Assembly: GCA_964036045.1 (NCBI GenBank)
Contig: OZ038379.1
Location: forward strand, 14,880,001-14,944,000
Reading direction: 5' to 3'
DNA from: Eutreptiella sp. 'Long Island Sound 2002'
Taxonomy: Eukaryota; Protista; Euglenida
DNA length: 64,000 nt
A program made the translations under genes and the position numbers. The notes beneath the pieces are model-generated. The model was not told the DNA's origin, searched no databases, and was given only the letters and a program-made list of their open reading frames with translations. Of the stretch, positions 5,051-47,480 are shown piece by piece (position 1 is the first letter of the stretch; the number at the start of each line of letters is the position of its first letter).

Positions 5051-5087
5051 TGGTAGTGGTATTGGTGGCAGCCTGGGTCCCAGACTC

Positions 5088-7101: not shown

Positions 7102-7284
7102 TTAGCAATACCTGCCATGGTGCTTCTCCCAGTACTCATAGGGCAGGGGCTTGTTTCTCATCTTCTTCGCATGCCGCAGCCCAAAACAGCAGCAGCAGAT
7201 ACCGCACAAGACCATGCCCGCCATAATGGCCACGACGACGATGGCAGATGCAGTGTGCACCTTAAATACCTCCACATTAAACTC
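7102..7284 (-). CDS. Last exon: TM helix, CCCC and cytoplasmic tail (absent from the supplied ORF track)
   Basis: ctgtag|GAG; translates [60 protein letters not shown]. Confidence 0.85.
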   Translation of the reverse strand, partial: EFNVEVFKVHTASAIVVVAIMAGMVLCGICCCCFGLRHAKKMRNKPLPYEYWEKHHGRYC

Positions 7285-9285: not shown

Positions 9286-9318
<33 letters not shown>

Positions 9319-12300
9319 GCACGCACGCAACCACCCACTCACTCACGCATGCACTCAGTCTTCCACATTTTGTCATTCGCATATACCTCGCTGGCTCTGG
9401 CGTCCACCCGGGTCGCCGATAGTTGCCGGCGGTTGGTCGTGGTCAGAGGCTCGTACACCATCACAATCTGCACAGGCTGGTTCCCCGTTGGCACAACAAA
9501 CTGTCCGCCGGTGTGTGTTGGGTCGTACCGCTGGAGGCAGGCCTCACACAGCGGGCAGTCGGGCCCTTTGGACTGGCAGCCGGAGTCCAACCGGAGCGTC
9601 AAATTGCCGAGGAGCTTCCGGATGCGGATCACAATGGTGCGGCTTGCGAAGGATGAGGAGCCCTGGGGACAGAGCGGGGAGGGGGCTACAGGGCAGAGGG
9701 GAGGAGGAGAGGGGGTGGAGGGCAGGGAGCAGGAGGGGGAGGAGGAGGAGGAAAGGGGCGGTGGCGGGGGCGGGGGGCGAAGGCTGTTGGCATGTGGCTA
9801 CCGAATCCAGGGATCTGGGGCCTGTTGTGGGCGTAGCTATCGCAGGGGCACCATCCCTCTGACGTGGAGAGGCCTGCAGACGGTTGAGAGAAACTGACGG
9901 CGGTTGGAGGGTGACTGACGGCGATTACAACGCGACCGAGGCCGATGGAATGGTACAGGAAGGACACAGCCCCTTCTTGGTTTGGGGCTGTTTCGGACCA
10001 AAGTGCACAGATTGTAGGCCAGCCTTGGCCCTTTTGGGGGCGTTGCTGAGACATATCGTGGGTCCAGAGGGTGAGACAAGGTGAAAGACAGGGAGGAAAG
10101 CAGGCCGGGTCGGTCACGTCTCAACCGTTTGACCGTATTCGGGGGCCAGGGTAGGGGGGGCATCCCTAGTGCAAACCTGTTGCAGCGCTTCCCCCAACAG
10201 GCAGAAACCAGAGCCCTTGAAATTCCAAGAAAAAATAGTGTCGGACCCATTTCTCCAGCCGATGAGTTAGACCCTGAGCCCTTCGTAGAATTAAAAGTAA
10301 AGCCCTTTTCAAGTGCTATCCGAAAAGTATGCACATACCCCCCCCCCCGTGGAACGATATTTTCCCGCCCCGGGCACAAAACAATGAGTCCGGGAGGTAA
10401 ATGAACTCCCTACACACGTTTTCGGAAATGAAATGTGTTTGTAAAGGTGGTACAGGAAGCGCAGTTTTCCAGTGCAGGGGTTATGGCAAGGGATGGGCTT
10501 TGGGTGGGGTGCAAGGGGCCAGCCTTTTTGAGGGTGGTGAACCCAAATGTTTTTTTCGAAGAATATGGGATGGTTTCCAAGAGATATTTGGCCTCATCAT
10601 GACATCACTGCGACCAGGATCCAAACAAGAGTACTAAAGATGGCTAAACTTCGGGTCAAAGACAACAAAGAGGTCATTGTACACCCCAAACAGGAAGTAG
10701 CACAGTTTTTTTTGGTGTATTGTCCTTCATTATGGGGAGAAATGCAGTATTTGGGATGCATATGGGCATGAAATAGATTTGGTATGCACATGGTGGGGGG
10801 GGGTATTTTTAGGGGAAAATGGCTCCTGTGAGGATCCTGTCAGACTCTACTCTACTCTAGCCATCTTTTGCATTGCCATGTGGCCTTTCAAATCCAGAGG
10901 TTGAGTCCCGGATGGAACGATGGCTTCCCGGGGCAGTGGTGCCAAGTGGCCCAGTTTTTGGCCAAAAACATCCTTTTTGGCCCAAGAGCCAATTGCCCTC
11001 CAAACGCTGCTTTTTGAGGCAAACCATGTTGAAAAGCACCACTTCGGCCCCTCCCAAAGCGTCGGACGTATTGATGATTCATTGCTCGAGTGACACTGCA
11101 GCCACTGTCCACATGTGCTGTCTGCCCTCTGCAGTGCCCTTCAGTGCTCAACTCGTAACCAGTAGTCCTGAAAATTCGGGGAAAAAAACATCGCCTATCC
11201 CCCCCCCCATACATCTCCGAAAAGCCCTTTTCATGGCGATTTCAAAAAGGTATAACATACCCCCCAGCACCACCACCAGACACGCAGCCGCGGGAAATAA
11301 GCCAACACTGACAAACACCTGGTTGCTTGGATCAATGACTCACCTACCCACGTTTTTGGACGAAAACATGTACTACAATTGTAAAAACATTCCGTAAGAC
11401 ATGCACAAGGAGGCAATAGGGAATGAATGAACGAATGAATGAATGAATAGGGCTCCAAACCAAACATTTTTAGGCCGAGTTTAGGTACACAAACCCAAAA
11501 CTTTCTTTCGCCCCAGACCCATCCATCACCTCCCATCCCTTAGGTCGAGCACTAAGCACAACCCTGAACTGGGCATACCTGGCCCATGCTGAAGGACTCG
11601 ATGCACTTCGAGCCCCCGGCCGCGAGCTGGGCCGCCAGATTGACACCGCTGGTGGACCCTGCGTTGCACAGCGGCAGCTCAGACGTCTGCGTGGCAGTTG
11701 GGGTGAAAGTGGGCAAGGTTGTGGGGCTGAGAGTGTTTGTCGGGGTGTTGGTCAAAGTAGTGCTGGGGATTAGGGAGCCACTGGAGGTCACCGTGGAGGA
11801 TGCGGTGGCGGTTGGGGTGTACAAGCGGCTGGGCGTTGGGGTGGTGCTTGATGTCAGGGTCGGAGTGACGAGCAGTGTGGGAGTCCGGGTGTAGATCTTG
11901 CTCGAGGTGATTGTGGCGCTCGCAGTTGGGGGAATACTACTGGTGGTTGTAGGACTCAGTGTGAAGAGAAGGCTGGGCGTGCGGGTGGCGCTGGGGGTGC
12001 AGGAGGGTGAACTAGTGGGGCTGCAGGACGGAGTGAACAGATGGCTCGGTGTGGCCGAGGATGTGCAGGATGCCGTGGCCGAGGGGGTGAAAAGGCGGCT
12101 GACGGTGATGGAGAAGGTGGTAGATGGGGTGAATAGGTGGCTGTAAGTGAGCGACGTGGTACTCGTTGTGGTGGAAGTCACGGTGAAGATAGAGCTCGGG
12201 GTTGACGTTCTGCTCCTCGTGTCGGTCGGAGTGGCAGTTGTAGTGCCGGATGCGGTGGTGGTTGCCGTGAAAACGTGGCTGGCAGTGAGTGTACTGCTCA

Positions 12301-15300
12301 AAGTCCGCGATGGGCTTGGTGTCGCCGACGGAGATGACGTGCGAGACGTAGTGCACGTGGCAGTACGCGTGAGGGTACCGGTGCGACTGGGCGAGGCTGT
12401 GAGCGTGAGGGAGCGTGTCTCGGTGAGCGACGTGGTACTCGTTGCGGTGGAAGTCACGGTGAAGGTAGAGCTCGGGGTTGACGTTCTGCTCCTTGTGTCG
12501 GTCGGAGTGGCAGTTGTAGTGCCGGATGCGGTGGTGGTTGCCGTGAAAACGTGGCTGGCAGTGAGTGTACTGCTCAAAGTCCGCGATGGGCTTGGGGAGG
12601 CGGTGGTTGTGACGGTCATGGTCGGCGTTAAGGATGCGGTGGAACTCGGGGTGGGGGAAGAAGAGGGCGTGGAAGTGCGGCTTGGTGTGCTGGAGGCGCT
12701 GAGGGACGTACTGCGGGTTGCAGTAGCAGTGCGACTGGGGGTCGGGGTGCGGGTCGATGTGGCAGTTTGGGTTGCGGACGGAGTCCTTGTGAAAGTCAAA
12801 GTGTAGCTGCGGGTTGAGGTGTGCGTCTGGGTCGGAGTCCCAGTGCCGGATGCTGTCGATGACGAAGTGAAGATATGGCTGGCGGTCGCCGTTCCGCTTG
12901 GACTGGCAGAGGCAGGGGGTGTTGCGCTGGCCGTTGGCGTGTAGGAGCGACTGAGGGTTTGACTGCCGCTCGCCGTCGCAGAGATTGTGGGGGATCTCGA
13001 GGGGCTGGGGGTGCATGTCCGAGACCGCGTGCCGGAAGGTGTCGATGTGAGGGTGCGGGTAAGCGTGGGGCTGCAGCTCGACGTTTGGCAGAGTGTCGCC
13101 GTCGGAGATGACGTGCGAGACGTAGTGCACGTGGCGGTAGGCGTGAGGGTACCGGTGCGACTGGGCGAGGCTGTGAGCGTGAGGGAGGGTGTCTCGGTGC
13201 GAGTGAACGTCGCAGTCACCGACAAAGTGGCGGAGGGAGTGCAGCTGAGTGTAGGAGTTGTGGTGGGCGTCGCGGTGCGGCTGAAGGTGAAGGTATCGGT
13301 GCGAGAGGCCAGGGCCGTGTCTGTCGGCGAAGGAGTGGGACTAGCAGTGCGGGTGCGGGTGGGGCTGAGGCTCGGGGACGGGGTCACGGTCGGGGTCACA
13401 GTCGTCATCGCCGTGAACGTGCTGTGGAACCAGCCCAAAGACACGCTGGTGATGGCGTCGCGGGTGGGCGAGGACAAGAGGGTGGGCATGTCGGGGCTGC
13501 GGTGGTGCCCGAGGCCCAGCTGCCCGTTCGCGTTCCACCCCGTCACGTAGCACTGCCGCCCCGCGAGGAATGCCGTGGCGCGGGCGCCGGCCGCGATGGT
13601 CTCGACCGCGGCGCCGTTCGGGGCCTGGACCTGCTCCGGCGCCGACCGGTCCCGCCCGTCCCCCAGCCCCAACTGCCCAACGTCGTTGGAGCCGGTCACA
13701 AAGACGTTCCCCCCCGCCAACAGGACCGAGTGGTGGTGACCGGTCTGGACGCTGACGATCTCGTCCCCCGTCGGGACCGTCAGTAGTTGTGGGATCAGGT
13801 ACTCGGCCTCGATCGTGCCAAGCCCCAGCTGCCCCCGCGCGTTGCTCCCGAACACGTAGCACTTGCCGCCCGCCAGCACTGCACTGTGGTACCGCCCCAG
13901 CGCAATGGCGGTGATCTCCGCGCCGCCGGGATCGGGGGACGGCAACAAACGCGGGCTGTAGCGCGTGTCCGTGTCTCCAAGCCCCAACTGCCCGTTGGTG
14001 TTCAGGCCCATGACGTAGCACTCCGCCGGGGCGCTGCCGTCCGATACCGCCTCCGTCAAGAAAGCGGTGTGGAAGGAGCCGGCGGCGACGGCTGTGATTT
14101 TGGCGCCGGTTGGAGCGAGTAGAGGCTGGAGAGTGGTCGTCAACCGAACAATCGCCGGCAGACCCAGTTGGCCGAGGCGGTTGTCGCCGGCTGCATAGGC
14201 CAGACCCGCGGCTGGAAAGAGGCCAACGACGGAACATGCTACAGCACACCGGGAGGAGTGGTGCGGGGGATGACACGGAGGTATGAGAGGTGCGGTCGCA
14301 CAGAGCAATGAGCAATTTAGGGATAGGACACAAAAGTGTGTGTGTGGCGTCGGGGTGTAGTACGCAGGTGAGGGGGGTGTACGGTGATCGGACATGGAGG
14401 GCCCTGAACGACCCTGAAATCCGAGTGGAACGTGGTCACTTGGACCAGCCTTACCGACCTGCAGCAACCCACAGGCACTCTTACCCACCCCCCGCAACCC
14501 ACTGCAACCATCACCCACCAGAAACAAGGTTCAACAATCCTCCGCAGCCGTCAGCTACTCTCGACAACCCTAAGCAATCAGCTACCGCCCTCAGCGCGGT
14601 CTTTAACATGAGGTCGGGACCATTCCCAAGATTCCCAAGAGGCCCCCAAGCGTGGGAATGCATTGCCCAGGGGGAGGACATGCGCCGCGCGCTGCTTTTG
14701 CGGCGAGTACACCCGGACGGGCCTGAGTCATGTCCCCTCCCCAAATGGCCCCTCAGGAAAGGAAACCCATTGGCCTCAGGAATTGCATCATCGTCCCTGT
14801 GTCCCACGGAGATTGCACAAGCAAGAGCGCAATTCCTTCGCCGCTTGGGCCACCCATTCATCGTCACGTGCGGGGGTGTTCAAAAAGCACCTCAGCAGCA
14901 CCGGAGGGCTCAACGAACGCAATCAGACATGGCTACGGGCCAAAGTACGGGTGCTTGGTCACGCCAGACGGTCGAATCCCCGCGCCCTCCCCCACAAACA
15001 CAAACACCAAAACTGCATCCCCAACACCGAACCCCAAGACATACCGTCCACAACAACCGTGTGGTAGGTCCCCAACGCCACCACACGGATCCGCTCGGTG
15101 GCCGGAAGCCGTTGTGGCGTGGCCGTGCGGAGTGTCGCGCTCGCGGCAATCCCGAGCCCCAACTGACCGAACTGGTTAGACCCCATGACATAGGCCTCGG
15201 TCGCAGTCAAGAGCACCGTATGCGAGCCCCCGGCGGCGGTGGACACGATGTCTTGGCCGCTCGGCACGGACAGAGGCTGCGGACTTACCTCATCACCGGC

Positions 15301-18300
15301 GGTGCCTGGGCACAGGCGTACGTTTAGAGGCATGGTACATGTGAGGGCGTGTGGGGGCGTGTGGGGGTGTGAAGGCGCACGGGTGGCAGATGGAGGCCCA
15401 GAGGGGCATCCGGGGGCACAGGCGGAAAAAAGGTCAAGGGGGCGGGGGCAGTGGTCTGGGGGGTGGGTAAGGGCAGGGCATGGGTGGCGGGAGGGGGTGC
15501 TGAGACATTGGAATGGACAGGGGCAGGGACGCGGGCAGGGGCAGCGGCAGCGGCAAGGGCAGACACAACGACGTGCGGGGTGGGGTTGTTGGAGAGCAAG
15601 GATTGGTGTGAGCTGGACTCGAGGTAACATGGTCCAGGGGTGTCTATCCTTCTATCTGCCGATTGCTGGACTCAACCAGCGACTGCTTTGACGAATGTTT
15701 TGCCACAGGGGCTGGCCTGTGCGTGAAGGGGGTGTTGGGTTGGGGTCTGGGACCCCCACGTTTGTGCACCAGAAATGGCCCAAAGAAATTTGTCCTTCGG
15801 TGAATTTCATTTTTTGCCCCGCCCAATGAACTTTGGTGAGGGGGGGGTCCAGAGGAGAGGGGGGGGGGGGGGCGTGCGAAAACAATCCTCTGACTCAGGC
15901 CTGCGCACGGGGCATAGAGAGGGCACGCGGGTGTGAGTGCACATGGGACTCTGGGGCCCGCGGGCACACCTGTCCCGAGCTGACCCTCGGTATTGGATCC
16001 CATGCTGTAGGCAACGGCCAGGATGGTGCAGGACCCGCTGTAGGTCCACTGGCCGTCCTTGCCGCACACCGCCGTGGGCACGCCCGAATACGGGTACACA
16101 CAGGTCGGCGAGCACGTCCCGAACGAGTGGAAATCGCAGTCGCTGTAGTCCACGTGCTCCCCGACCGGCTCCCCGCAGTCCACCTCAAATGCGAGGTCGA
16201 ACCGCACTTGATCTGTCACCTGCCGGGCATGGCAGGGGCACAGGACATGGGTGTGGGGGGGGGGGGGGCGTGGGTAGGGGTGGGCGCAAGCGTGGGAGCG
16301 GTCATGGGTAAGAGTATGAAAAGGGGGGTGGGCAGAGCCGGGGCCAGGGCAGGGGCAGGGGCAGAGGCAGGGGTAGGGGCAGCAGTAGGGGTGAGACCAG
16401 AGATAGGGATCGGGGCATGGTCGGTATCTCAGAGCATCTCACCACCATTGAAAATCATGGTATCAGAGGAGCTGTACGCCTCTCCGTGCCTCTGGGACAT
16501 ATGCCACATAAATAACACATATGCACCACATACGTACCACATACATGCCACACCTCATATGGACCATGTACACAGCACATATACAGCACATGTACACCAC
16601 ACACACATCCACCAATCTACACCCTCATGCACACCGCAAGAAAAAGCCAGGTTTGCCCATCCTTCCCTTTGGGCATTAGGCACGCCCAAACGGGGGGAAA
16701 TTGACTGCAACCGGCTCAAGCAGATTCGAGTATTGCGGACAGGTTGAGAAGAAATATTGCTTTTTTGACCCTTTTTGACCCACTTAAACTCCCAGAAGGG
16801 CCTGTGTCCAAGGCTTCTTGGACCTTTAGTGGCCAAAACGGTTGAAAAAGGCTCAAAATGGACGCAAACACTTGTTCGAGCCTCTCACGTGGTTTGGGAA
16901 CAAAATTGTCAAAAAAATCCTTTGACCCATTATTGGCCCACAGTCGACCCATTGTAGTCCGCGCTGGTTGGGCTGGTCGTGCACTGGCTTGTGGGGACCA
17001 AGAGTGCAATATTGCACGGAAAACACAACCAATGCGTGTGGTGGTGGTGGTGGTGGTGGTGGTTGGAGGGGGGCAGGGATTGCAGGTGGACGGCGTACTC
17101 TCCGATTTGGAGTTCGAGCCATGCGGAAACTCAAAGGGTTCAGGGTCGATTCTGAAAAAAAAATGCAATTGTGGCCCACTTTTGACCCCATTCGATCCCC
17201 AAACACAAACGGCCTAAAACCATGTGCTTCGGCATGGCAAGTGGTCAGGAGCCTTTTGGAAAAATGATTTTTCACGCGTATTAGACGCATGGCAGACCTA
17301 TTGTGGCCCCAACTGGACACAAGGGCACGCGTGCTCGTGCCAGTTGGGCAACGGTGAGGGGGCCCTTCTGGAGGGTGGAAAGGCAAAACGTAGGGGGATG
17401 CCGGTGGACAAGATGCTCTCGAAAATCGCATTTTGAGCGATGTAGCCCGCCATATCTTGGTTTGGAGCTACGCAGCCTGAGCTGCACAGATTCTCGGCAA
17501 TTTTGGGCGCTTTTGTTGGTCATTTATCAGACACATTGGGAGTGTGAAGGCATCATAGCTTCTTTGACACGAGCAAACCAAGCCGGCCGTAGCACATGAT
17601 ATTCTTTTCTCGCTGCACTTGCTCTTGGCTGCCTTGAGAGGCGTTCAGGGTCGATGGGGCCTAAAATAGCTTCTTTTGGCTAACCCTGAAAACTGGGCTG
17701 CCATCGTGCTTCTGGTTCAAACTGGATTCCGGAAGGGGACAGGCCATGCCCACCATGGAGTAGAGCAGAGCCCAAAGCATGGGACGCAGTTCTGGCCAAA
17801 GGCTTGCTTCTTGCTCAGTGGCCGCAATAAGCCAAGCAAGTACCCAAGCACCGGGGCGCCTGAGGGGTCAAAATCGAAAACTTCATTGGAGGATAATTCT
17901 GTCTCCCCAAATGATGATTTTTCAGGGGGTGAGACATCCAATTTCATACCTTGGGGTAATACACGCGAATAACCCCCCAAAACGCCGCGCCGTGTACCCC
18001 GTGATCTAACTTCCCCTCTCTTAGAGGTGATTTTTGGAAGAATTGATTGAACAATGGCCGAGGGTTGTGTGCATGTACCTCCAGCTTCACAAGCCGCGTG
18101 CTGTAGTCGAATCCGAACCCACACCAGCCGCATTCACCGCCGCACTGCCCGTAGCACCGTTTGCCTTCGCAGGAAGCACCACCGTGGGCACTGAGCCCCC
18201 CGAGCGGTAAGACTGGCTGAGTGGACTCCACTTGGAATGGCGTCCCTTCCAAATTCAACCGGAAGCGGGATTCGAACTGGGGGGCCCCGCGGCAATCGGC

Positions 18301-36300: not shown

Positions 36301-39300
36301 CCAAAATGTCAAATTCACCAACAGGATGTACCGGTACTTGCTGCTACGGTGTATGACTATCGGGCAACTTCAATGCAGCGAAGAGCCACAGGGGTAAAGC
36401 ACATACCGCACTTGGGAACACGGTCTTGAAGGGAGATGCAGCCCGCCTGCCCGACGTTGCCATAATCGTGAGTATCCCAGTAGACATCGAAGTAATAACC
36501 ATATGGTGCCTTGCATGCACACTCTGGACTGGAGTTGCAACCGGCAGAGAGCGTGGCGTCCGTGCATTCACCTGGCAAGCAATAAAGAGAGAGAAAACGC
36601 TGTCCCTACTACTCTCGTGGCTGAACATGTGTACGTAGATTTGGATGCTCTCCGCCACACAATCGTGCAGCATCCCATCCTTGCGCTATTGTCAGCTATA
36701 AGATCCCCTGTGCATCGTGTATGGGGCTGGAGCCCGAGCAACTAGTGTGCCCCGCACAGGTGTTTTAGACTTTTCTGACTGGTCAATATGCGTTCAAAAT
36801 CTCTTGACCCCCAAAATGTCAAATTCACCAACAGGATGTACCGGTACTTGCTGCTACGGTGTATGACTATCGGGCAACTTCAATGCAGCGAAGAGCCACA
36901 GGGGTAAAGCACATACCGCACTTGGGAACACGGTCTTGAAGGGAGATGCAGCCCGCCTGCCCGACGTTGCCATAATCGTGAGTATCCCAGTAGACATCGA
37001 AGTAATAACCATATGGTGCCTTGCATGCACACTCTGGACTGGAGTTGCAACCGGCAGAGAGCGTGGCGTCCGTGCATTCACCTGGCAAGCAATAAAGAGA
37101 GAGAAAACGCTGTCCCTACTACTCTCGTGGCTGAACATGTGTACGTAGATTTGGATGCTCTCCGCCACACAATCGTGCAGCATCCCATCCTTGCGCTATT
37201 GTCAGCTATAAGATCCCCTGTGCATCGTGTATGGGGCTGGAGCCCGAGCAACTAGTGTGCCCCGCACAGGTGTTTTAGACTTTTCTGACTGGTCAATATG
37301 CGTTCAAAATCTCTTGACCCCCAAAATGTCAAATTCACCAACAGGATGTACCGGTACTTGCTGCTACGGTGTATGACTATCGGGCAACTTCAATGCAGCG
37401 AAGAGCCACAGGGGTAAAGCACATACCGCACTTGGGAACACGGTCTTGAAGGGAGATGCAGCCCGCCTGCCCGACGTTGCCATAATCGTGAGTATCCCAG
37501 TAGACATCGAAGTAATAACCATATGGTGCCTTGCATGCACACTCTGGACTGGAGTTGCAACCGGCAGAGAGCGTGGCGTCCGTGCATTCACCTGGCAAGC
37601 AATAAAGAGAGAGAAAACGCTGTCCCTACTACTCTCGTGGCTGAACATGTGTACGTAGATTTGGATGCTCTCCGCCACACAATCGTGCAGCATCCCATCC
37701 TTGCGCTATTGTCAGCTATAAGATCCCCTGTGCATCGTGTATGGGGCTGGAGCCCGAGCAACTAGTGTGCCCCGCACAGGTGTTTTAGACTTTTCTGACT
37801 GGTCAATATGCGTTCAAAATCTCTTGACCCCCAAAATGTCAAATTCACCAACAGGATGTACCGGTACTTGCTGCTACGGTGTATGACTATCGGGCAACTT
37901 CAATGCAGCGAAGAGCCACAGGGGTAAAGCACATACCGCACTTGGGAACACGGTCTTGAAGGGAGATGCAGCCCGCCTGCCCGACGTTGCCATAATCGTG
38001 AGTATCCCAGTAGACATCGAAGTAATAACCATATGGTGCCTTGCATGCACACTCTGGACTGGAGTTGCAACCGGCAGAGAGCGTGGCGTCCGTGCATTCA
38101 CCTGGCAAGCAATAAAGAGAGAGAAAACGCTGTCCCTACTACTCTCGTGGCTGAACATGTGTACGTAGATTTGGATGCTCTCCGCCACACAATCGTGCAG
38201 CATCCCATCCTTGCGCTATTGTCAGCTATAAGATCCCCTGTGCATCGTGTATGGGGCTGGAGCCCGAGCAACTAGTGTGCCCCGCACAGGTGTTTTAGAC
38301 TTTTCTGACTGGTCAATATGCGTTCAAAATCTCTTGACCCCCAAAATGTCAAATTCACCAACAGGATGTACCGGTACTTGCTGCTACGGTGTATGACTAT
38401 CGGGCAACTTCAATGCAGCGAAGAGCCACAGGGGTAAAGCACATACCGCACTTGGGAACACGGTCTTGAAGGGAGATGCAGCCCGCCTGCCCGACGTTGC
38501 CATAATCGTGAGTATCCCAGTAGACATCGAAGTAATAACCATATGGTGCCTTGCATGCACACTCTGGACTGGAGTTGCAACCGGCAGAGAGCGTGGCGTC
38601 CGTGCATTCACCTGGCAAGCAATAAAGAGAGAGAAAACGCTGTCCCTACTACTCTCGTGGCTGAACATGTGTACGTAGATTTGGATGCTCTCCGCCACAC
38701 AATCGTGCAGCATCCCATCCTTGCGCTATTGTCAGCTATAAGATCCCCTGTGCATCGTGTATGGGGCTGGAGCCCGAGCAACTAGTGTGCCCCGCACAGG
38801 TGTTTTAAACTTTTCTGACTGGTCAATATGCGTAGCACGGGCACTCAGAGCATACCACGGCATGCTGTGCAGGATCCACCACAATCAACACCAGCCTCGT
38901 CGCCGTTTTGTGCCCCATCGTCGCAGGTTGGAGCTGCACAACGCAATACAGGAGAATCACAGGATAAGAGCCCACACAGCTGCGACCGGTCGTTGAAACG
39001 GTACACCGTTGTTTTGCCTTGTGCAGGTTGATCCAAAGAGCACACCACCCAAAGGAGAGCCCTTGCGTGGCAGCGAGGCGGTGCGCATACGTGATGTGCC
39101 ACAAATTTCAAATCCCGGTTTAGCCACAGAGTAATCCGATGACCAGGTGATGGTGGTCCCCGCCGCCACAAACACGCCCGAAGGCCCATCGAAACCAGAG
39201 AAATCTGTGCCACCCATGGTCAGCTTATCATAATTGTGCTCGGTCTCAAAAGCATTCACTTGCAGCGTCGTGGAACGAAGAACTCGGATCGTACATGCTT

Positions 39301-42300
39301 CCGAGAGGCCGTAGTCGTTCGGGTAATTTGGGCTCAAGAAACAGCCGCTGGACATGGCCACGGTGCAGGGCCCAGACGTTACAGTAAATTCTGTTTAGGA
39401 AAGATGAATTCCGATTCACAGGGATCACGGGGTGCCCGGATGCTGGTCCATAAGCAGTGGAGGTCCAGCTTCGCCCCCTACGCCTTTGCTACGACGCTCC
39501 TAGGCTCACCGGCACAATGTGCACACAACACGAAGGAAGACTTTGGGTGCACACAGGAACACAAGCGGTGCATTAACATGTGCTCTAACATACGACAGTC
39601 AGAAGGGCACGATCCACCACAATCAACTCCAGTCTCGTCGCCATTCTGGATCGAATCACCACATGTCCCTGCCGTCACTACACAAGAGTGGCAGCGAACA
39701 ACACTCAATCTGATCGCAGTGGGTGGGGTGGGGCCCTCTGTTTGGATCCGCCTCCCTGTGTGACATGTAGTCCATCTGTGGTTTCTTTACGGGGCCCTGG
39801 ACAGTGTGGTGCATGACCACACGCCTTCGCACACAATCACCCACAACCAGCGCCGCGCGTTGATGCCAGATGCGCCAAGTTGTGTGACGCTGTGGTGGCC
39901 CTGCCCAGTACAAACAAGCGCAATTGGAATGATTGCCGTGCCAACACAAATACAGAGGAGTGGCGAAAGTTACAGCCCTTGAAAGTGAAAAGCCTCTCCC
40001 CGGACGTCTAAAGTCAAAGTGATGTCCAATTTAACGTCAAGGTCCACTCCATGTCTTGTTTTCCAATATCATCTTCTACAGCCACATCTATTTCGGCTTG
40101 GAAGCAGAGCAGACCAAAGCTGACTGTTGAGACACACACAAACTGGCAGGCATGGCAGTGACACATGACTTAATTACAAACCTGCATCCTTCATATAACA
40201 GTCATGGCCAGCCATGCTGTTGAGAGTGCTGGCAGATGCTTCTGCCTTCCAGAAACAGACGTCTAATGTGCGCCAAACAAATGCTGAGCATGACGCTGAG
40301 CTCGTACACTTGGCCTTGCATTCATCTACCCCATTAGCACCTGGCTCCCAACCAGAGAGTGTACCATCTTCCAGAGTGATGCCAATCCCTCCACAATGCT
40401 TGCCATTTGTCACCTCGTAATCATCTGCAAAATAGAGTGGAGGGAAGAGGTGAGGGGGGTACGCCAAAGATTCAGGATCTTGCCCAAAAGCTGGGAAGGT
40501 GCAAGGTACAGCTCATTATAAAAGGCTGCTTTAGCGCCAGGTTTAAGGATGATTGTCCTGAAAATTCAGGAGAAACTCCAGTGTGTCAGTAGTCCACTTT
40601 GAGGTGAAAATGAGCAGGTTTTGACCCATTTTCTGGATTATTGTCCTGAAAGTTCAGGAAGTTCGCCAAGGGAACAAGCTTACCCATGCTGTTGTACAAT
40701 TTCCCTTTTGGGCTCTGAGTTTGGACGTTGGCGCTTTTGCAATAGCAAAATTTGGACCATCGGTTATGATGATTGGAAATCCACAGTGACCTGTGACACA
40801 TAGCGACAACAGACAACGTCTCATTTCCACCTCTAAATGGACCACCACGTGGCACAATGGTGGGAGATATGGCTCATTCAACGCCCATTTGCAGTCATTT
40901 CATTGTTCAATCTCTTTGATAAAAAAGCGGCGCTTGGAGGCACCTGCTTGACACACTGGAGTTTATCCTCAACTTTCAGGACAATCGGCCCAAACACAGG
41001 CTGAAAATGGCCATTTTCGGCCCCATTTTTGGTGCCAAGAAGTTCCATCGGCTCTGTTTGGGGAACTGAGCGGGAAAAAAATTGTCCATTGATATGGCAA
41101 TCAATATTGAAAACCAATGGTTCAACTTTGAAATGGTGCGTTGGATAATCAAATTTGATTGGGGCTTGTTTGTTGCTTATTGGTTGCGCCGCAAATAGAG
41201 GACTTTCACGGGACGTTGACGCCATGTAAAATCCTCCTGTCCTGCTCCTTTTCCACCGCCTCCTCCTCCTCACCACGCGAACACTGCTCATAGAATACCT
41301 GTTTGCAATCATTCCATGGCCCAATCACAATGAGAAAACAATGGCACTCCCAGAGGAAGCTGCTTTATGTCCTGTACGTTCAGGACAGTCATCCCAAAAA
41401 CAAGCTGAAAAGGGCCGTTTTCAACCCCTTTCGCAGCCACCGAAAGCCGCCAACCGCTCCAATTTGGAACCTGGGTGGGAAATATGCTGTTGGGGGTGAC
41501 AAACGATCAGGAAAATCAACAGTTGAATGTGGAAACGGCAAATTGGAGAAGCTAATTTTTGCTGCGGCTTGTTACGTGTCGCTTGCCTGTTGATTGCTTA
41601 CTTGCGCCTGAAAGATTGATTTGTTGGAGGACTTTGACTAAAGAGGACGCAAGCGATCGTCTAAAGTCTTCCAGATCCTCTCGTGCTTCCTATGACCCAA
41701 TTGTTGCAGAAAATGAATGGTCTCGTCTGGAAGCACCAGCTGACCACACCAACGATCAAGACGATAGCCCTAAAATCCTTGGTGAAACTGGCTGCTCTCC
41801 ACCACGAAACGGCAAGTGCCTGGCATGACCACATAGAAAGTGCTATCCAGGTGCATATTTCTTCACACTTTGGCATGGTGAGCAATACAATGGGTCACAA
41901 TGATCCATTTGGGACGTCTTAACGAATATGCTGAAAACCCGGGAAATTGGAATCAATACAAAACTATTAGCTCGTAAATTTTCTAGAATGGACGCAACGG
42001 TATTGAGAAACGTCCCGCGGCTTCTCCTCCTTTCCTCAGTTGGATATGGATCCTATGTCTACAATTTGGCTTTTTCGTGTTTTTGAGAGATGTACTCGGT
42101 GATATGAATTCACCGTCGTGCGCCCCGTAACAGCGCCATATTCATGCGCAGAGTAACGGGAAAACGGTGACACATTGTGCCGCGCGCACTATGGGGAGGA
42201 ATTGACCATCCGGACTATGCCAGGGGTATCCATCGAAGTGCAGAACAGCAGCTTTTCACAAGAACCCAAGGGTTGGCACCTGACTGATCCAGCTTTTGGG

Positions 42301-44701
42301 CACATATCCGTACTCCTGAAACGATTCTTTGGTCCTTTGCTAACACTATCCGGTCCAGCTGACAATTCTGTGCATGCGAGGGCACAATCAGAAAGAACAT
42401 GAGCTGCTTATCCCTACAGACTTGCCGCTAGCCCCTAGCAGCTCAGGCGAGATCACAACGAAGATCACAAACTGTATCCTGTGTGCGGTATCAAATGACT
42501 CTGTAGCACGATCAGACACTGATTATTGACTTTTCAGACACGCGGAAACTGGCAGGCATGGCAGTGACACATGATTTAAGTACAAACCTGTATCCTTCAT
42601 ATAACAGTCATGGCCAGCCATGCTGTTGAGAGTGCTGGCAGATGCTTCTGCCTTCCAGAAACAGACGTCTAATGTGCGCCAAACAAATGCTGAGCATGAC
42701 GCTGAGCTCGTACACTTGGCCTTGCATTCATCTACCCCATTAGCACCTGGCTCCCAACCAGAGAGTGTACCATCTTCCAGAGTGATGCCAATCCCTCCAC
42801 AATGCTTGCCAATTATCACCTCATATCCATCTGCAGAATAGAGTGGAGAGAAGAGGTGAGGGGGGTACGCCAAAGATTCAGGATCTTGCCCAAAAGCGGA
42901 GGGTTATACCAAGGTATCTTGCACCACAACACAAAAAGTGTAAAAGACTGACCAACGAATGTCGTGCGTATTGTCGGTTGCTGCTATGTGCCACAGGTCA
43001 CTGTGGATGTCCACTTATCATACCCATGGTTCAAACGGGGAAGGGACTCACCTCTGTGCACTGCCTGTGGTGATGCTAGCGTGAGGCTTTGTGGCAAAAT
43101 GGTGGGGCTTCCAGAACCTCCGCCTCCCATTAGTAGAAACACACAACTTGCACCTGAACGCAATGCCTCCTGACTGCCTGGAGCGCAGCGAGCGCATGCA
43201 TTGACCCCCACGTTGTAGGAGCAATATGCCTCTTGTGGGGTACCATCGTTGGCACAGACCATCCCTTCTGCATCATAGTCAGGAGCGGCAGGGTTACACT
43301 CGTTGTCCACTGTGATAACTTGTTGCAACGAACAGGGATTTCCATTGATTGTCACGGTTGCTGAAACAGAACAATGGAACATGCACTATGGAATACACAG
43401 AGTGGAATCCCTGTACACCAAGCAAACATCTTAATGTTCAGAGTGTTCTGCAGTTCGCAGTCCTTGCATTTTGTCAAACGGGACCAGTTAAATTGATACC
43501 CAAGAATGATTGCAGTATTTCAAAGCGGAGGGTTATACCAAGGTATCTTGCACCACAACACAAAAAGTGTAAAAGACTGACCAACGAATGTCGTGCGTAT
43601 TGTCGGTTGCTGCTATGTGCCACAGGTCACTGTGGATGTCCACTTATCATACCCATGGTTCAAACGGGGAAGGGACTCACCTCTGTGCACTGCCTGTGGT
43701 GATGCTAGCGTGAGGCTTTGTGGCAAAATGGTGGGGCTTCCAGAACCTCCGCCTCCCATTAGTAGAAACACACAACTTGCACCTGAACGCAATGCCTCCT
43801 GAATACCTGGGGCGCAGCGAGCGCATGCATTGACCCCCACGTTGTAGGAGCAATATGCCTCTTGTGGGGTACCATCGTTGGCACAGACCATCCCTTCTGC
43901 ATCATAGTCAGGAGCGGCAGGGTTACACTCGTTGTCCACTGTGATAACTTGTTGCAACGAACAGGGATTTCCATTGATTGTCACGGTTGCTGAAACAGAA
44001 CAATGGAACATGCACTATGGAATACACAGAGTAGAATCCCTGTACACCAAGCAAACATCTTAATGTTCAGAGTGTTCTGCAGTTCGCAGTCCTTGCATTT
44101 TGTCAAACGGGACCAGTTAAATTGATACCCAAGAATGATTGCAGTATTTCAAAAATGCCAGGTACTTCGACTTACTGATCCGGCTTCAAACTTTCCGGGC
44201 AATTTGTGCTCGGAATGAGTGCGGTAATTCTGTTTTATCACATCCTGTAAATACGTTTGCAAGCACGTTTCTTCAAACCTTACTACTGCAAAAGTGCTAG
44301 TGTCGAAAATCAGGGCCAACAAAGGAAATCTGGGTAAGCATGTTCCCTTGGCGAACGCCCTGAACTGTAAGGATGATCGTCCTTATAACGGGCTTCAAAA
44401 CTGCTCACGGCCCACACCTCAGCATCCTGCAGCTTCTTCTTCCGTGTACTGAATGCAAAAGGCAATCAGTCTTCACTCTCTCCATGATGCATGGTGTTGC
44501 TGCTTGAGTCTTTTCATGGTACACGCACATAACACCGTTGGTACAGCAACACCACAAGTTTTTTTGAAAAAAGAAATTCCGGAATTTCACAAGAATTCCA
44601 AAGGGTGACACCATCGCTGTCCTCTGCTGCCTACCCCCTTTAATCTCCTGTCTGTCGCCATTGCCCTTCAAGCCCAAGGCCTATGCTCCCGAACATGCAC
44701 T

Positions 44702-44749
<48 letters not shown>

Positions 44750-47155
44750 GTCTCTCTCTCTATCTCTCTCTGTCTGTCTGTCTCTCTCTCCATTGCCCTG
44801 CAAGACAGTCAAGGATTAGAACATACTGTTCCCCTTAATTTTTTTTGTGGCATTACCCCGCATCCCCTTTTGCGAGAGCAATGCTCTTGTCAAACAACAC
44901 TAGGGGTCGTTTCCGCAGCTTTTGGAACCATGTCCTTCCGTACTTTGCCCTTTATAACTTCACCCCCGTGTCAGAGCAACATCATTTTCACGTCTAAATG
45001 GACGACCACCTGGCACCATGGGTTGAAACACGGCTCATTCAACACCCGTTTGCAATCATTTCATTGTCCAATCACTTCGAAAAAAAGAACAGCGCTTATT
45101 GGAGGCACCTGCTTAACACACTGGAGTGTATCCTAAACTTCCAGCATTTTCGGCCAAAAAACCACGTCGAAAATGGCCATTTTTGACCCCATTTTTGGCT
45201 GCCAAGACCTGCCATAACCTCTGTTTGGGGGAGGGGATGGGGAAACGTTGCCCATCAGTATGGCAATCACTATTGAACAACAATGGTTCGGTTTGGAAAC
45301 AGTGTGTCTGAGAAATCACTTTTTACTGCGGCTTGCATGCTGCTTGCTTGCACCTGAATTGTTGGTTTACTAGACATGGACACACGTAAATGAGCGCCAT
45401 GTGAAGTCATCGTGTCCTCCTCCTGCTGCTGCTGCTGCTTATCCTCCTCCTTCTTCTGCTGCTACTGCTCCCACTCTTCATTGAATACCCATTGGCAATC
45501 ATTTCATTGCCCATTAACTGCGGTCAAGAATAGCGCTTATTGGAGGCACTGCGGTGTATCCTGAACTTTCAGGATTTGTGACCAAAAAAGGAGCTGAAAA
45601 TTGCGATTTATGGCTCCACTTTTGGCTGCCGAGAGCTGGCAATGGCTCTGTTTGAAAAGAAATGACGGGGAAAGCTGCCAATTGGGATGGTAATCAACAC
45701 TGAAGAATGATGTTTCGGTTTTGAAATACCTTTACTGGGTCTTGCCTGCGCGTTGCTTGCTTGCTGCACCTGAATTATTAGTTTGCTTAGGGCAGATGAC
45801 GTGACAAGAGATACCCGAGCGAGGTGGGCTGGCGCTCGGAAATGGCGATGGGCTTGGACTGGCACTTGGAGCTGAGATTGAAGTGGATGCACATGGACAC
45901 TGGCAACACTGACACTGGGAGGGGCTGATACTTTTATCGCCTATCGGCATTCAGGAGCCCTTTTGCGCAGCCCTGGCCACCAGACAGTCCCCCTCGCCAG
46001 ATTCATCACAACAGGAAGCTGAACCTTCAGGCAAAGTCTTAGCTACGCAAATGAGTGCACATTGAAACAGGTGAGACAAGAGGGACAGGGATTGCACAGA
46101 TCGATCAGCGAGGTTGATATTGACCTTGGCAGCAGCGGACGGAGTGGGCCAAGATATCAGGGCTGAAGACCCATTGGAATGCAGAGCGTGGCTTCAATGG
46201 ACTGAGATTGGCAAGACTTTGACTGTGCGGCGATAAGATGGAATGGCCACCTCCAACTTGCTTATGGAAGGGGAGGAGGAGGCATCCCACCTCAGACACC
46301 TCCCCATTGCAGCCCCTTGTAAAGCACCTACGACAGGATCCCCACATTTCATCCATGAAACGTCACCAGTTTCCTACAACGCCAACACAATCCCCCTTTT
46401 TTTGCAACTGATCATATCACCATCTTACAACCATTCACCGCATGTGGGTGGTGGTGGTGGTGCTGGTACTGGTGCTGTAGGTGGTGGATTGTCAATGCCA
46501 ATCCCTCCACAATGCTTGCCAATTATCACCTCATATCCATCTGCAGAATAGAGTGGAGAGAAGAGGTGAGGGGGGTACGCCAACGATTCAGGATCTTGCC
46601 CAAAAGCGGAGGGTTATACCAAGGTATCTTGCACCACAACACAAAAAGTGTAAAAGACTGACCAACAAATGTTGTGCGTATTGTCGGTTGCTGCTATGTG
46701 CCACAGGTCACTGTGGATGTCCACTTATCATACCCATGGTTCAAACGGGGAAGGGACTCACCTCTGTGCACTGCCTGTGGTGATGCTAGCGTGAGGCTTT
46801 GTGGCAAAATGGTGGGGCTTCCAGAACCTCCGCCTCCCATTAGTAGAAACACACAACTTGCACCTGAACGCAATGCCTCCTGAATACCTGGGGCGCAGCG
46901 AGCGCATGCATTGACCCCCACGTTGTAGGAGCAATATGCCTCTTGTGGGGTACCATCGTTGGCACAGACCATCCCTTCTGCATCATAGTCAGGAGCGGCA
47001 GGGTTACACTCGTTGTCCACTGTGATAACTTGTTGCAACGAACAGGGATTTCCATTGATTGTCACGGTTGCACGGATGGGCAGCACCAAACCGCAAACAA
47101 GGAGGAGTATCCAAGGGAACTTGCTATGTGTGGGCAATGCACGACCACCCGCCAT
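7102..47155 (-). CDS. Giant multi-exon type-I membrane mosaic protein (about 31 exons, about 3,030 aa), putative adhesin/receptor
   Basis: All exons listed below have AG/GT boundaries with compatible phases, and no junction creates a stop. ATG at 47155, TAA at 7102-7104; signal peptide at the N-terminus and TM near the C-terminus. Confidence 0.85.
9387..9662 (-). CDS. Exon 30 (phase 0-0), juxtamembrane Cys-containing domain
   Basis: ccccag|GGC TCC...GAG|gtatat; [20 protein letters not shown]...[15 protein letters not shown]. Confidence 0.8.
11579..14211 (-). CDS. Exon 29 (2633 nt): RCC1 repeats followed by a Thr/Ser/Pro mucin-like stalk
   Basis: ttccag|CC...CAG|gtatgc; five G.N..GQLGL motifs plus a closing half-repeat, then about 600 aa of T/S/P-rich sequence. 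Confidence 0.9.
15045..15305 (-). CDS. Exon 28 (1-1): RCC1 repeats
   Basis: gcccag|GC...GAC G|gtatgt; [29 protein letters not shown]. Confidence 0.85.
15970..16219 (-). CDS. Exon 27 (0-1): Sushi/CCP-like module plus first RCC1 half-repeat
   Basis: cggcag|GTG...ACA G|gtgtgc; CGEP...[29 protein letters not shown], then [13 protein letters not shown]. Confidence 0.8.
18079..18420 (-). CDS. Exon 26 (0-0): C-terminal part of a GON-like domain
   Basis: ccccag|GGC...GAG|gtacat; WGIAADC...[10 protein letters not shown]...[12 protein letters not shown] resembles GON (FATAGDC...FSINL.GTGF...GKCGGYCGKC). Confidence 0.75.
19241..19365 (-). CDS. Exon 25 (1-0): N-terminal part of the GON-like domain (not in the ORF track frame)
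   Basis: tcgcag|CC CTG...; [41 protein letters not shown]. The donor is after 19241 or alternatively after 19232. Confidence 0.7.
21982..22335 (-). CDS. Exon 24 (1-1): 'CL.PG.Y.F...D..GDG..GG' beta module
   Basis: tttcag|GG...TCT G|gtatgc; [31 protein letters not shown]. Confidence 0.85.
24408..24746 (-). CDS. Exon 23 (1-1): divergent copy of the same beta module
   Basis: caacag|AC...GAA G|gtgtgt; VVWDIGG...[10 protein letters not shown]. Confidence 0.8.
25761..26234 (-). CDS. Exon 22 (1-1): F5/8C/fucolectin-like galactose-binding-fold domain
   Basis: Donor GAA G|gtatgc; NFALGSTA...LLTDG...WGSC...LQVTL...IREIRMWSR...LSLAELDVF. The acceptor is uncertain (26234 or nearby). Confidence 0.75.
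26576..26881 (-). CDS. Exon 21 (1-1): 'YP.E..W.I...PGPY...D.YSDGWHGG' beta module
   Basis: tcacag|GC...CCA G|gtatcg. Confidence 0.85.
27830..27995. repeat. Degenerate telomere-like G-rich hexamer tract (TAGGGG/TAGGGC/TTAGGG)
   Basis: Direct read; intronic. Confidence 0.8.
28330..30300 (-). mobile_element. Tandem array of tRNA-derived SINE-like units (4 tRNA-like heads plus a headless partial unit)
   Basis: Minus-strand heads at about 28512-28582, 29010-29080, 29397-29467 and 29795-29865 have A box TGGCCCAGCGG and B box GGTTCGAATCC (variants in some copies), each followed by a shared GC-rich body. Confidence 0.75.
30559..30657 (-). CDS. Exon 20 (1-1): Thr/Ser linker
   Basis: tttcag|TC...GAG C|gtatgc; [32 protein letters not shown]. 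Confidence 0.75.
33859..33939 (-). CDS. Exon 19 (1-1): Ser/Pro linker
   Basis: gaacag|CA...CGA G|gtagtg; [26 protein letters not shown], 81 nt. Confidence 0.55.
34534..34938 (-). CDS. Exon 18 (1-1): F5/8 type C (discoidin/CBM32-like) domain
   Basis: ccgcag|AG...TGC G|gtgtgc; [26 protein letters not shown]...[19 protein letters not shown]. Confidence 0.85.
35372..38833. repeat. 510-bp tandem array (about 6.8 units), each unit containing one 165-nt exon
   Basis: Identical ORF sets recur every 510 bp; I saw only one substitution (near 38808). Confidence 0.97.
35387..38611 (-). CDS. Exons 11-17: seven identical 165-nt phase 1-1 exons (35387-35551, 35897-36061, 36407-36571, 36917-37081, 37427-37591, 37937-38101, 38447-38611)
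   Basis: tgccag|GT GAA TGC...AAG TGC G|gtatgt; 55-aa module with 6 Cys: [55 protein letters not shown]. Confidence 0.8.
38856..38933 (-). CDS. Exon 10 (1-1): '[17 protein letters not shown]' Cys-rich repeat
   Basis: gtgcag|CT...CGT G|gtatgc. Confidence 0.85.
39091..39390 (-). CDS. Exon 9 (1-1): CUB-like domain
   Basis: aaacag|AA...TCA C|gtatgc; SPNYPNDY...CTI...[10 protein letters not shown]...[12 protein letters not shown]. Confidence 0.85.
39594..39677 (-). CDS. Exon 8 (1-1): '[19 protein letters not shown]' Cys-rich repeat
   Basis: gtgtag|TG...TGT C|gtatgt. Confidence 0.85.
40182..40424 (-). CDS. Exon 7 (1-1): PAN/apple-like domain, copy B
   Basis: ttgcag|AT...GCA G|gtttgt; [18 protein letters not shown]...CFWK...DCYMK. 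Confidence 0.85.
42588..42830 (-). CDS. Exon 6 (1-1): PAN/apple-like domain, copy A
   Basis: ctgcag|AT...ACA G|gtttgt; near-identical to 40182-40424. Confidence 0.85.
43154..43360 (-). CDS. Exon 5 (1-1): 69-aa Cys-rich module (GSQ variant)
   Basis: tttcag|CA ACC...TCA G|gtgcaa. Confidence 0.8.
43783..43989 (-). CDS. Exon 4 (1-1): 69-aa Cys-rich module (GIQ variant)
   Basis: 629-bp tandem duplicate of exon 5 with the same splice sites. Confidence 0.8.
44706..44790. repeat. (CT)n/(CTGT)n microsatellite
   Basis: Direct read. Confidence 0.95.
45815..45871 (-). CDS. Exon 3 (1-1): Ser/Pro linker
   Basis: tctcag|CT...TCG G|gtatct; [18 protein letters not shown], 57 nt. Confidence 0.55.
46439..46540 (-). 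CDS. Exon 2 (1-1): truncated PAN start fused to a Pro-rich linker
   Basis: ctgcag|AT...TGC G|gtgaat; [33 protein letters not shown]. Confidence 0.6.
46864..47155 (-). CDS. Exon 1: start codon, signal peptide and first Cys-rich module
   Basis: [29 protein letters not shown]|TVTINGNPC...; donor TCA G|gtgcaa. Confidence 0.8.
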
Positions 47156-47310
47156 ACTGCAATTATCAACAAGCACCCGCCTCGTCAATCAGCAGGAGAA
47201 GAGGACAGGGTCGCTATCAAAGAATAATTTGTGTGAAAAAAGAGGCATATGGAGGTGCGTGACACAAAATTTTGGTCAGGGCGTAACTTACGGCCCGTAA
47301 TTTATGATCA

Positions 47311-47480
47311 CTGCATCAGAACTGCATCAGCAGTGCATCAGAACTGCATCAGAACTGCATCAAGAGTGCATCGGAACTGCACAAGAACTGCAGCAGATCT
47401 GCATCACAACTGCAACTGTTGTGTTGTGTTGTGTTATGTTGTGTTGTGTGGTGTTGTGTTGTGGCACCAGTGCAGTCAGT
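47311..47480. repeat. Short block of the GCATCAGAACT/(GTTGT)n satellite
   Basis: Same units as the 48.7-51.1 kb array. Confidence 0.9.

Follow-up and report, generated by a model that had tools for sequence, protein, structure and literature searches.

Exon shuffling is best described in animals, where the shuffled module types all belong to class 1-1 and are mostly extracellular, and a review by Patthy asks why the process should be 'restricted to Metazoa' and what makes phase 1 predominate (PMC8001218). Here we describe a predicted gene in a 64,000-nucleotide (nt) stretch of the euglenid Eutreptiella sp. 'Long Island Sound 2002' (contig OZ038379.1, forward-strand positions 14,880,001 to 14,944,000; G000:C2:14880001-14944000 in our numbering, hereafter the window). 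Together with related loci elsewhere in the genome, it resembles the class 1-1 mosaics of animals, such as neuropilin, cubilin, MASP and the clotting factors, in having one module per exon, flanking phase-1 introns and signal peptides, in its module types (CUB, MAM, PAN/apple, discoidin), in the ordinary phases of the intracellular part, and in tandem exon duplication and cassette insertion into introns. It differs from them in adding an RCC1 propeller, GON-like and unassigned beta-sandwich modules and in its predicted cytoplasmic effector, an ADP-ribosyltransferase (ART) domain.

A narrower precedent from outside the animals is given by the ROCO/LRR immune-receptor candidates of brown algae (PMC11378527): they likewise have one repeat per symmetric exon and a proposed cassette exchange, but involve a single, intracellular repeat type (LRR), whereas our gene combines many unrelated extracellular folds in class 1-1 exons. 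In the literature collection searched we found no report on CUB domains in Euglena, and a search for Euglena and exon shuffling returned only a paper on plastid presequences. With respect to introns, about 80% of those analysed in E. gracilis are conventional (PMC6366073), and 71.8% of those in E. agilis are reported to be nonconventional (PMC12501133).

Results

A predicted 39-exon gene on the minus strand

Contigs or chromosomes of the same assembly (2.28 Gb, 2,317 contigs) are denoted by C-numbers; the window begins some 14.9 Mb into a contig of 193.5 Mb. Its minus strand carries protein-like pieces, with two PAN, a CUB, an F5/8 type C (F5/8C, discoidin), a GON and an RCC1 match as well as Cys-rich units, each on single stop-free pieces (Pfam or profile matches). 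A small codon and splice-site model was trained on the clear exons, exons were chained by dynamic programming, and weak exon links were curated by eye and against paralogs; all database searches were run exon by exon. The resulting gene model comprises 39 exons (12,813 nt, 4,270 codons, no in-frame stop) over about 59.5 kb, from window position 47155 to 12.3 kb past the window start, for which exons 33-39 were taken from C2:14860001-14880000 (Table 1). We consider it quite probable that the locus is an intact, very large gene for a mosaic surface receptor whose ectodomain is encoded in the animal manner, in 1-1 exons. In the predicted protein, a signal peptide would be followed by a mosaic ectodomain (about 2,900 amino acids, aa), three transmembrane (TM) spans and a cytoplasmic part (about 1,000 aa).

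The first-pass annotation of the window had proposed a 40-kb gene of about 3,030 aa at 7102-47155, without giving a strand. A multi-exon gene indeed covers this interval, on the minus strand, but it runs on beyond 7102 and is longer than proposed, and the interval holds 29 of the model's exons instead of the roughly 31 counted before. The proposal that the exons join in frame holds for the whole model, with 37 GT-AG introns and a single GC-AG intron, and so does the course from a signal peptide to a TM segment with a tail, as the ATG at 47155 opens a signal-peptide-like stretch, and 7284-7105 encodes a TM segment followed by a basic tail; the two end coordinates therefore correspond to the start and the apparent stop of the minus-strand gene. 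The stop at 7102-7104 was rejected as gene end: it is intronic, 8 nt behind a phase-2 donor (7112|7111) that joins 5595, and the gene is extended past this point because the open reading frame (ORF) of a paralog on C8, described below, runs on where the window has the 'stop'. Conventional introns numbering 38 in one gene are unusual, yet not extreme in view of the share reported for E. gracilis.

Other readings of the interval were discarded. The plus-strand frames at 7-47 kb are the antisense of GC-rich coding DNA, their 'KPQLP'/'PQLP' motifs being the antisense of the RCC1 motif 'GQLG'. Early gene-finder output, consisting of tiny low-score exons in long introns and mostly in the 28-30 kb repeat array, was dropped, and a scan for strong splice sites gave nothing else.

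Intron phases of ectodomain and cytoplasmic part

The phase rule is directly visible in a tandemly repeated 510-bp unit, in which a pyrimidine tract and CAG|GT... precede a 165-nt exon that ends in ...TGCG|GTATGT, both borders being phase 1. Along the gene, 22 phase-1 introns are followed by phases 0, 0, 1, 1, 0 and 0 up to TM1 and then by 2, 0, 1, 0, 1, 0, 0, 0, 0 and 0. Symmetric 1-1 exons with a length divisible by three comprise exons 2-22 without exception, plus exon 26, and the codons split at phase-1 junctions encode mainly Gly, Asp and Ala. Phase 1 accounts for 24 of 28 introns in the ectodomain versus two of ten in the cytoplasmic part (Fisher p = 3.5e-4), and with recent duplicates collapsed the ratio is still 15 of 19 versus two of ten (p = 0.0045; binomial p = 6e-5 against an expected 1/3). 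Within a single gene, 1-1 modules outside the cell thus contrast with ordinary introns in the intracellular part, as they do in animals. The phases of the cytoplasmic half also argue against phase 1 being the most frequent phase in Euglena genes at large. The counts given earlier (the first 24 introns, and 26 of 30 overall, in phase 1) have to be corrected to the first 22 and to 24 of 28 in that span. The frame is kept when any of exons 2-22 is skipped, and the isoform space derived from this is a matter of arithmetic only.

An intronless paralog with a spliced-leader remnant

A genome search with the first GON exon led to C8:58084715-58071183, an intronless ORF of 4,511 codons that is collinear with the window gene. 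Exons 18-39 were matched singly to this ORF, and neighbouring exons adjoin there within one (split-codon) residue, giving 21 junctions without introns; the junction of exons 23 and 24 is fixed by a paralog on C18 as well. Upstream of the ATG, the 5' untranslated regions (5'UTRs) of C8 and the window correspond until the homology stops abruptly. On C8 this breakpoint is preceded by a worn spliced-leader remnant, CTCTCTGAGGGT-T-TTTTTTTTCG (21 of 25 bases), and on the window side it follows a pyrimidine tract and AG. Because a spliced leader is joined only to RNA, the most plausible source of C8 is an mRNA that had been both spliced and trans-spliced, and C8 would then represent a retrocopy, i.e. 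a fossil cDNA, of the mRNA of a sister gene. The N-terminal third of C8 is unlike the window gene, with an RCC1 propeller and a cadherin-like/Big_9 domain in place of the Cys-A, PAN and CUB modules. Compared with C8, the window gene carries eight extra 1-1 exons (seven Cys-55 exons and the F5/8C exon), located exactly at the phase-1 junction ...GGSC|VTES....

A different history would have the C8-like intronless form as ancestral, with introns added later at the module borders ('modularisation'), in which case C8 would be no proof of splicing. Intron-free giant ORFs built from these modules are common in the genome and reach 16,232 codons, and no poly(A) tract was found at the C8 locus. We nevertheless regard this order of events as improbable, given that the leader remnant, an addition made to RNA only, sits exactly at the 5' breakpoint of homology, and that thousands of leader copies in the genome indicate that leader-bearing RNA was often copied back into DNA.

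With the core (24 nt) of the spliced leader of Euglena as query, 5,458 matches were obtained in the whole genome versus none for the reversed control, and the contig, for which the first-pass annotation had considered a metazoan source, is non-metazoan by this measure. CUB, MAM, PAN and F5/8C are typical animal modules, and animal contamination or a recent acquisition of the gene from an animal would make the pattern an ordinary one. This we judge extremely improbable: the window is part of a 193.5-Mb contig in an assembly rich in Euglena spliced-leader copies, dozens of diverged family copies occur on many chromosomes, one paralog (C8) bears the Euglena leader, and the CUB exons are too dissimilar to animal CUB domains to reach the Pfam cut-off.

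Module exons and an imported cassette

Most exons equal one domain, as had been proposed: the PAN, CUB, F5/8C and GON matches each lie inside one exon, and paralog similarity starts and stops at exon ends. The same modules are found as exons elsewhere. CUB-like exons number at least 25 in the genome, and a phase-blind splice-site score was applied to seven of them (C12, C9, C13, C19, C20; 46-57% identical), most of which showed a phase-1 acceptor a few codons ahead of the first Cys and a phase-1 donor after FEIC, with exons of 291-300 nt (a multiple of three); the exceptions were one copy with a longer exon and one high-scoring segment pair with a weak donor outside phase 1. By the same score, F5/8C copies on C16 (405 nt), C10 (426 nt) and C4 (396 nt) and a PAN exon on C10 (273 nt) are 1-1, whereas two further F5/8C copies have ambiguous donors. 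The contexts of the modules differ, with PAN followed by F5/8C on C10, MAM-CUB-PAN in one frame on C9, and a run of CUB exons on C19, while C26, C20 and C15 carry 2.2-kb arrays of the Cys-A unit.

The locus on C9 (C9:30246886-30250182) is another mosaic of the same parts, with a MAM domain (32.7 bits), a CUB domain and a PAN-like Cys module in one 364-codon frame and F5/8C copies nearby. MAM has at least 83 full-length matches above the Pfam cut-off genome-wide, some in frames the size of an exon and others in giant frames, the longest with 16,232 codons (C11, around 68.40 Mb); this abundance amounts to a large animal-like extracellular toolkit in this genome.

Within the window gene, exon-plus-intron duplications in tandem comprise seven 510-bp units (six of them 100% identical over 510 bp), three 630-bp units (99%) and two PAN units (96%); the 55-aa module of the 510-bp array has only two partial copies elsewhere in the genome. 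In addition, the F5/8C exon lies on a 642-bp cassette shared with C16 and C10, which includes, besides exon 17, 230 nt of the intron before it and 7 nt of the donor; both breakpoints are intronic. Beyond the F5/8C exon, homology between C16 and C10 extends for over 1 kb, but the window does not share it, so that the cassette is native to the C16/C10 lineage and foreign to the window gene. A whole-gene duplication on C16 or C10 was rejected, as the cassette alone is shared.

No more than about 16 nt separate the 5' edge of the cassette from the position at which the intron of the last 510-bp unit ceases to match the other units (35355-35371), and the two rearrangements thus nearly share a breakpoint close to a 5' splice site.

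These data bear on whether the phase-1 run might stem from serial tandem duplication of one ancestral 1-1 cassette, with no exchange between unrelated genes. Many exons are indeed recent copies (the seven identical units, the three at 99% and the two PAN exons at 96%), and Cys-A and CUB exons stand in tandem arrays elsewhere as well. We consider such an origin quite improbable, since 15 of 19 introns are still phase 1 once duplicates are collapsed, since unrelated folds (CUB, PAN, discoidin, Cys units, beta-sandwich and linkers) are all 1-1, since the F5/8C cassette is common to the window and C16/C10 only between intronic breakpoints while C16 and C10 are homologous beyond them, and since the neighbours of the modules differ from locus to locus (PAN-F5/8C on C10, MAM-CUB-PAN on C9). 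The earlier suggestion of animal-like modular shuffling in a protist-like genome is supported by these results, in that the genome is non-metazoan, the module exons are 1-1 both here and in other genes, and one cassette is foreign.

Domains of the predicted protein

From its N-terminal side, the ectodomain would contain three Cys units, two PAN domains, a CUB domain, two small Cys motifs, the seven identical 55-aa Cys modules and a discoidin domain, followed by three beta-sandwich modules, a GON-like domain, an RCC1 propeller and a mucin-like stalk; the signal peptide and the three TM segments are supported by hydropathy. Both PAN/apple copies (PF00024) score above the gathering cut-off. The GON match (PF08685) also exceeds its cut-off but covers only profile positions 94-188 of 199, and all copies in the genome match only from about position 67 on. 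RCC1 (PF00415/PF25390) passes the cut-off with several repeats, reaching 174.3 bits in five stretches of exon 27, with more blades in exons 25 and 26. A profile built from the seven CUB-like exons, in which four Cys are invariant, matched cubilin in PDB (E 3.1e-11) as well as TSG-6, neuropilin-2, GPR126 and MASP-1, and the CUB paralogs span profile positions 6-108 of 110. F5/8C copies elsewhere in the genome pass the Pfam cut-off, with up to 84.5 bits.

Exons 19, 21 and 22 are three copies of one all-beta module. AlphaFold2 (AF2) predicted an all-beta, generic beta-sandwich fold for exon 22 (predicted local distance difference test, pLDDT, 62), with a carbohydrate-binding module (CBM) as top structural match (Z 6.2), while the model of exon 20 was unusable (pLDDT 40). 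Pfam gave no match for exons 19-22, exon 28 and the Cys units, the PDB profile search none for the beta-sandwich module, the ESM Atlas only unnamed clusters for exon 22, and BLASTP no similarity between exons 20 and 17.

On the cytoplasmic side, exon 36 encodes a predicted NAD:arginine ADP-ribosyltransferase domain (PF01129, 33.4 bits versus a cut-off of 22.3), in which R (LYRG), S (SRFS) and E-x-E (EAE) motifs were recognised by eye. In its profile and motifs it is like the vertebrate ecto-ADP-ribosyltransferases; unlike these glycosylphosphatidylinositol (GPI)-anchored or secreted ecto-enzymes, prediction places it inside the cell, as the end part of a three-span receptor. The combination of an ART domain in this position (exons 35-36, window -4578 to -7704) with a preceding weak WWE match (exon 32) is an unusual receptor-effector pairing. 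Taken together, the domains suggest a cell-surface recognition or adhesion receptor that may signal intracellularly via ADP-ribosylation.

Exon borders and repeats

Several borders in Table 1 were chosen over competing splice sites. Extending the Cys-A exons to a strong GTGAGT donor 126 nt further was rejected, as paralogs shift frame there. For exon 21 the donor at 24336 was dropped in favour of 24408 after comparison with C8, and for exon 23 the best-scoring donor (19198, phase 1) was rejected, as intron-free paralogs read ...KLRIK|GV.... A (GT)n-like run (24336-24407) begins exactly at the exon 21 donor, the microsatellite itself providing the donor GT.

Table 1 Coordinates of the predicted gene and associated features (window positions; negative values lie before the window start)
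Feature	Position	Strand	Evidence or remark
Putative spliced-leader acceptor AG	47214..47215	-	Pyrimidine tract and AG where C8 homology starts
Putative 5'UTR	47213-47156	-	Follows from the putative trans-splice acceptor
Exon 1: start codon (ATG) and signal peptide, Cys-rich unit A1, phase-1 end	46888..47155	-	Signal peptide 79% identical to C8 start
Exon 2: Pro-rich linker, 102 nt, 1-1, lower confidence	46439..46540	-	Strong acceptor and donor
Exon 3: Cys unit A2, 183 nt, 1-1	43807..43989	-	Paralogs change frame ~12 codons beyond the donor, so the exon ends there
Exon 4: Cys unit A3, 183 nt, 1-1, GC donor (lower confidence)	43178..43360	-	
Exon 5: PAN/apple, 243 nt, 1-1	42588..42830	-	Pfam PAN_1 23.9 bits (cut-off 21.4); C10 paralog 1-1
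Exon 6: second PAN, 243 nt, 1-1	40182..40424	-	Pfam PAN_1 24.1 bits; 96% duplicate of exon 5 including flanks
Exon 7: Cys motif, 84 nt, 1-1	39594..39677	-	Matches C8 aa 1389-1411
Exon 8: CUB, 345 nt, 1-1	39046..39390	-	Pfam CUB 19.4 bits (cut-off 21.4); profile match to cubilin 3e-11
Exon 9: Cys motif, 78 nt, 1-1	38856..38933	-	Matches C8 aa 1388-1408
Exons 10-16: seven identical 165-nt 1-1 exons (55-aa, 6-Cys module)	35387..38611	-	510-bp exon-plus-intron tandem array
Exons 10-13	38611-38447, 38101-37937, 37591-37427, 37081-36917	-	
Exons 14-16	36571-36407, 36061-35897, 35551-35387	-	
Shuffled F5/8C cassette, 642 bp	34527..35168	-	93.5% identical to C16:25.97 Mb; versus C10, homology reaches 35355
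Exon 17: F5/8 type C (discoidin), 405 nt, 1-1	34534..34938	-	Pfam F5_F8_type_C 22.3 bits (cut-off 28.2), profile 2-110 of 127
Exon 18: Thr/Ser-rich linker, 99 nt, 1-1	30559..30657	-	C8 aa 1424-1455, 62%; exon 19 match directly next
Exon 19: beta-sandwich copy 1, 276 nt, 1-1	26606..26881	-	C8 aa 1457-1547, 90%
Exon 20: 157-aa module, 474 nt, 1-1	25761..26234	-	C8 aa 1562-1707, 83%
Exon 21: beta-sandwich copy 2, 339 nt, 1-1	24408..24746	-	Junction 'VPE-G-PKCAAT' resembles C8 'VPEGPTCAAT'
Exon 22: beta-sandwich copy 3, 354 nt, 1-1	21982..22335	-	C8 aa 1825-1941, 84%
Exon 23: GON-like domain, first part, 125 nt, phase 1 to 0	19241..19365	-	C8 aa 1943-1983; K|G junction fixed by intron-free C18 and C8 paralogs
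Exon 24: GON-like, 342 nt, phase 0-0	18079..18420	-	Pfam GON 33.4 bits (cut-off 22.6); C8 aa 1984-2096
Exon 25: Cys-rich segment with the first blade of RCC1, 250 nt, phase 0 to 1	15970..16219	-	C8 aa 2097-2179
Exon 26: RCC1 blades, 261 nt, 1-1	15045..15305	-	Pfam RCC1 51.7 bits; C8 aa 2181-2268
Exon 27: RCC1 blades, then ~600-aa Thr/Ser/Pro-rich stalk, 2,633 nt, phase 1 to 0	11579..14211	-	Pfam RCC1 174 bits; C8 aa 2270-3070
Exon 28: Cys-rich segment next to the membrane, 276 nt, phase 0-0	9387..9662	-	C8 aa 3071-3163, 75%
Exon 29: TM1 and basic stop-transfer stretch, phase-2 donor AG|GTATTG	7112..7284	-	Junction 'HHG-R-FRCLHPRW' resembles C8 'HRG-R-FRVLHPRW'
Exon 30: TM2 and TM3, phase 2 to 0	5343..5595	-	C8 alignment, hydropathy
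Exon 31: cytoplasmic, phase 0 to 1	3325..4090	-	82% to C8 aa 3305-3557
Exon 32: cytoplasmic, weak WWE match, phase 1 to 0	1810..2480	-	
Exons 33-39, including the predicted ART domain	-420 to -12302	-	Beyond the window start
Stop-free pieces with PAN_1 match	42526-42903; 40177-40512	-	23.9 bits; 24.1 bits
Stop-free piece with CUB match	38960-39394	-	Pfam-matched
Stop-free piece with F5/8C match	34415-34990	-	Pfam-matched
Stop-free piece with GON match	17947-18519	-	Pfam-matched
Stop-free piece with RCC1 match	16438-11555	-	Pfam-matched

Three repeats were noted in and around the gene. Intron 30 contains a 650-bp (GCCCAT)n tract (window 4401-5052). Intron 18 (window 28280-30300) holds an array with units of about 390-400 bp that carry a tRNA B-box-like GGATTCGAACCC; ARAGORN reported no tRNA in this repeat, which may be a tRNA-derived family of short interspersed nuclear elements (SINE). 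The stretch directly upstream of the 5' end of the gene (47300-51070) includes over 2 kb of satellite DNA with the 11-bp unit (TGCATCAGAAC)n and higher-order units of 171 bp.

Discussion

Several points weigh against the reading of this locus as an intact receptor gene built in the animal manner. The junctions of exons 1-17 were set by splice signals, paralog borders and frame continuity only. The CUB exon (PF00431, 19.4 bits, with paralogs at 18.9-20.8 bits) stays below the gathering cut-off of 21.4, and the F5/8C exon (PF00754), with 109 of 127 profile positions aligned, likewise stays below its own. The function is read from domain content alone, and C8 lacks the poly(A) tract looked for. 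The identity of exon 2 as an exon is uncertain, as is the GC donor of exon 4, the six identical 510-bp units could reflect inflation or collapse in the assembly, and a protein database search with the F5/8C piece returned genome-derived ORFs only and no transcript-derived protein. These last four observations would also fit a gene in which part of the N-terminal half (exon 2, the extra Cys-A units and some of the identical exons) consists of pseudo-exons or an assembly artefact, and which is maybe poorly expressed, exon 2 in particular being a truncated PAN exon with a new donor, whose first 16 codons duplicate the start of the PAN exon. We hold this to be unlikely, since all of these exons are open and 1-1 with strong acceptors; moreover, dropping any of them changes neither the frame nor the overall conclusion.

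Three processes have left traces in this DNA. Cassettes of exon plus intron were duplicated in tandem, the F5/8C cassette was imported from another gene lineage via recombination inside introns, and spliced, leader-bearing mRNA was probably retroposed into intronless paralogs such as C8. With phase-1 introns on both sides, modules could be added, duplicated or lost without a break of the frame. As a wider proposal, put forward tentatively and as a possibility more than an expectation, the host lineage may, independently of animals, use genome-wide 1-1 exon shuffling for surface receptors, with cassette exons alternatively spliced and retroposition freezing exon combinations as intronless genes; C8 would then be a frozen isoform without exons 10-17.

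Class 1-1 extracellular exon shuffling is treated as an animal hallmark linked to the origin of multicellularity. With a unicellular and very distant lineage showing the same layout, the same modules and the same contrast within one gene, the questions 'why Metazoa' and 'why phase 1' become testable. The locus offers young and datable events for this purpose, comprising cassettes at 100% and 99% identity and an imported cassette at 93.5% with mapped breakpoints, while the intronless, leader-tagged paralogs provide an internal record of past splicing. If phase 1 arose again here, this would point away from selection for multicellularity and towards causes found outside animals too, for example proto-splice sites in signal peptides and glycine-rich linkers.

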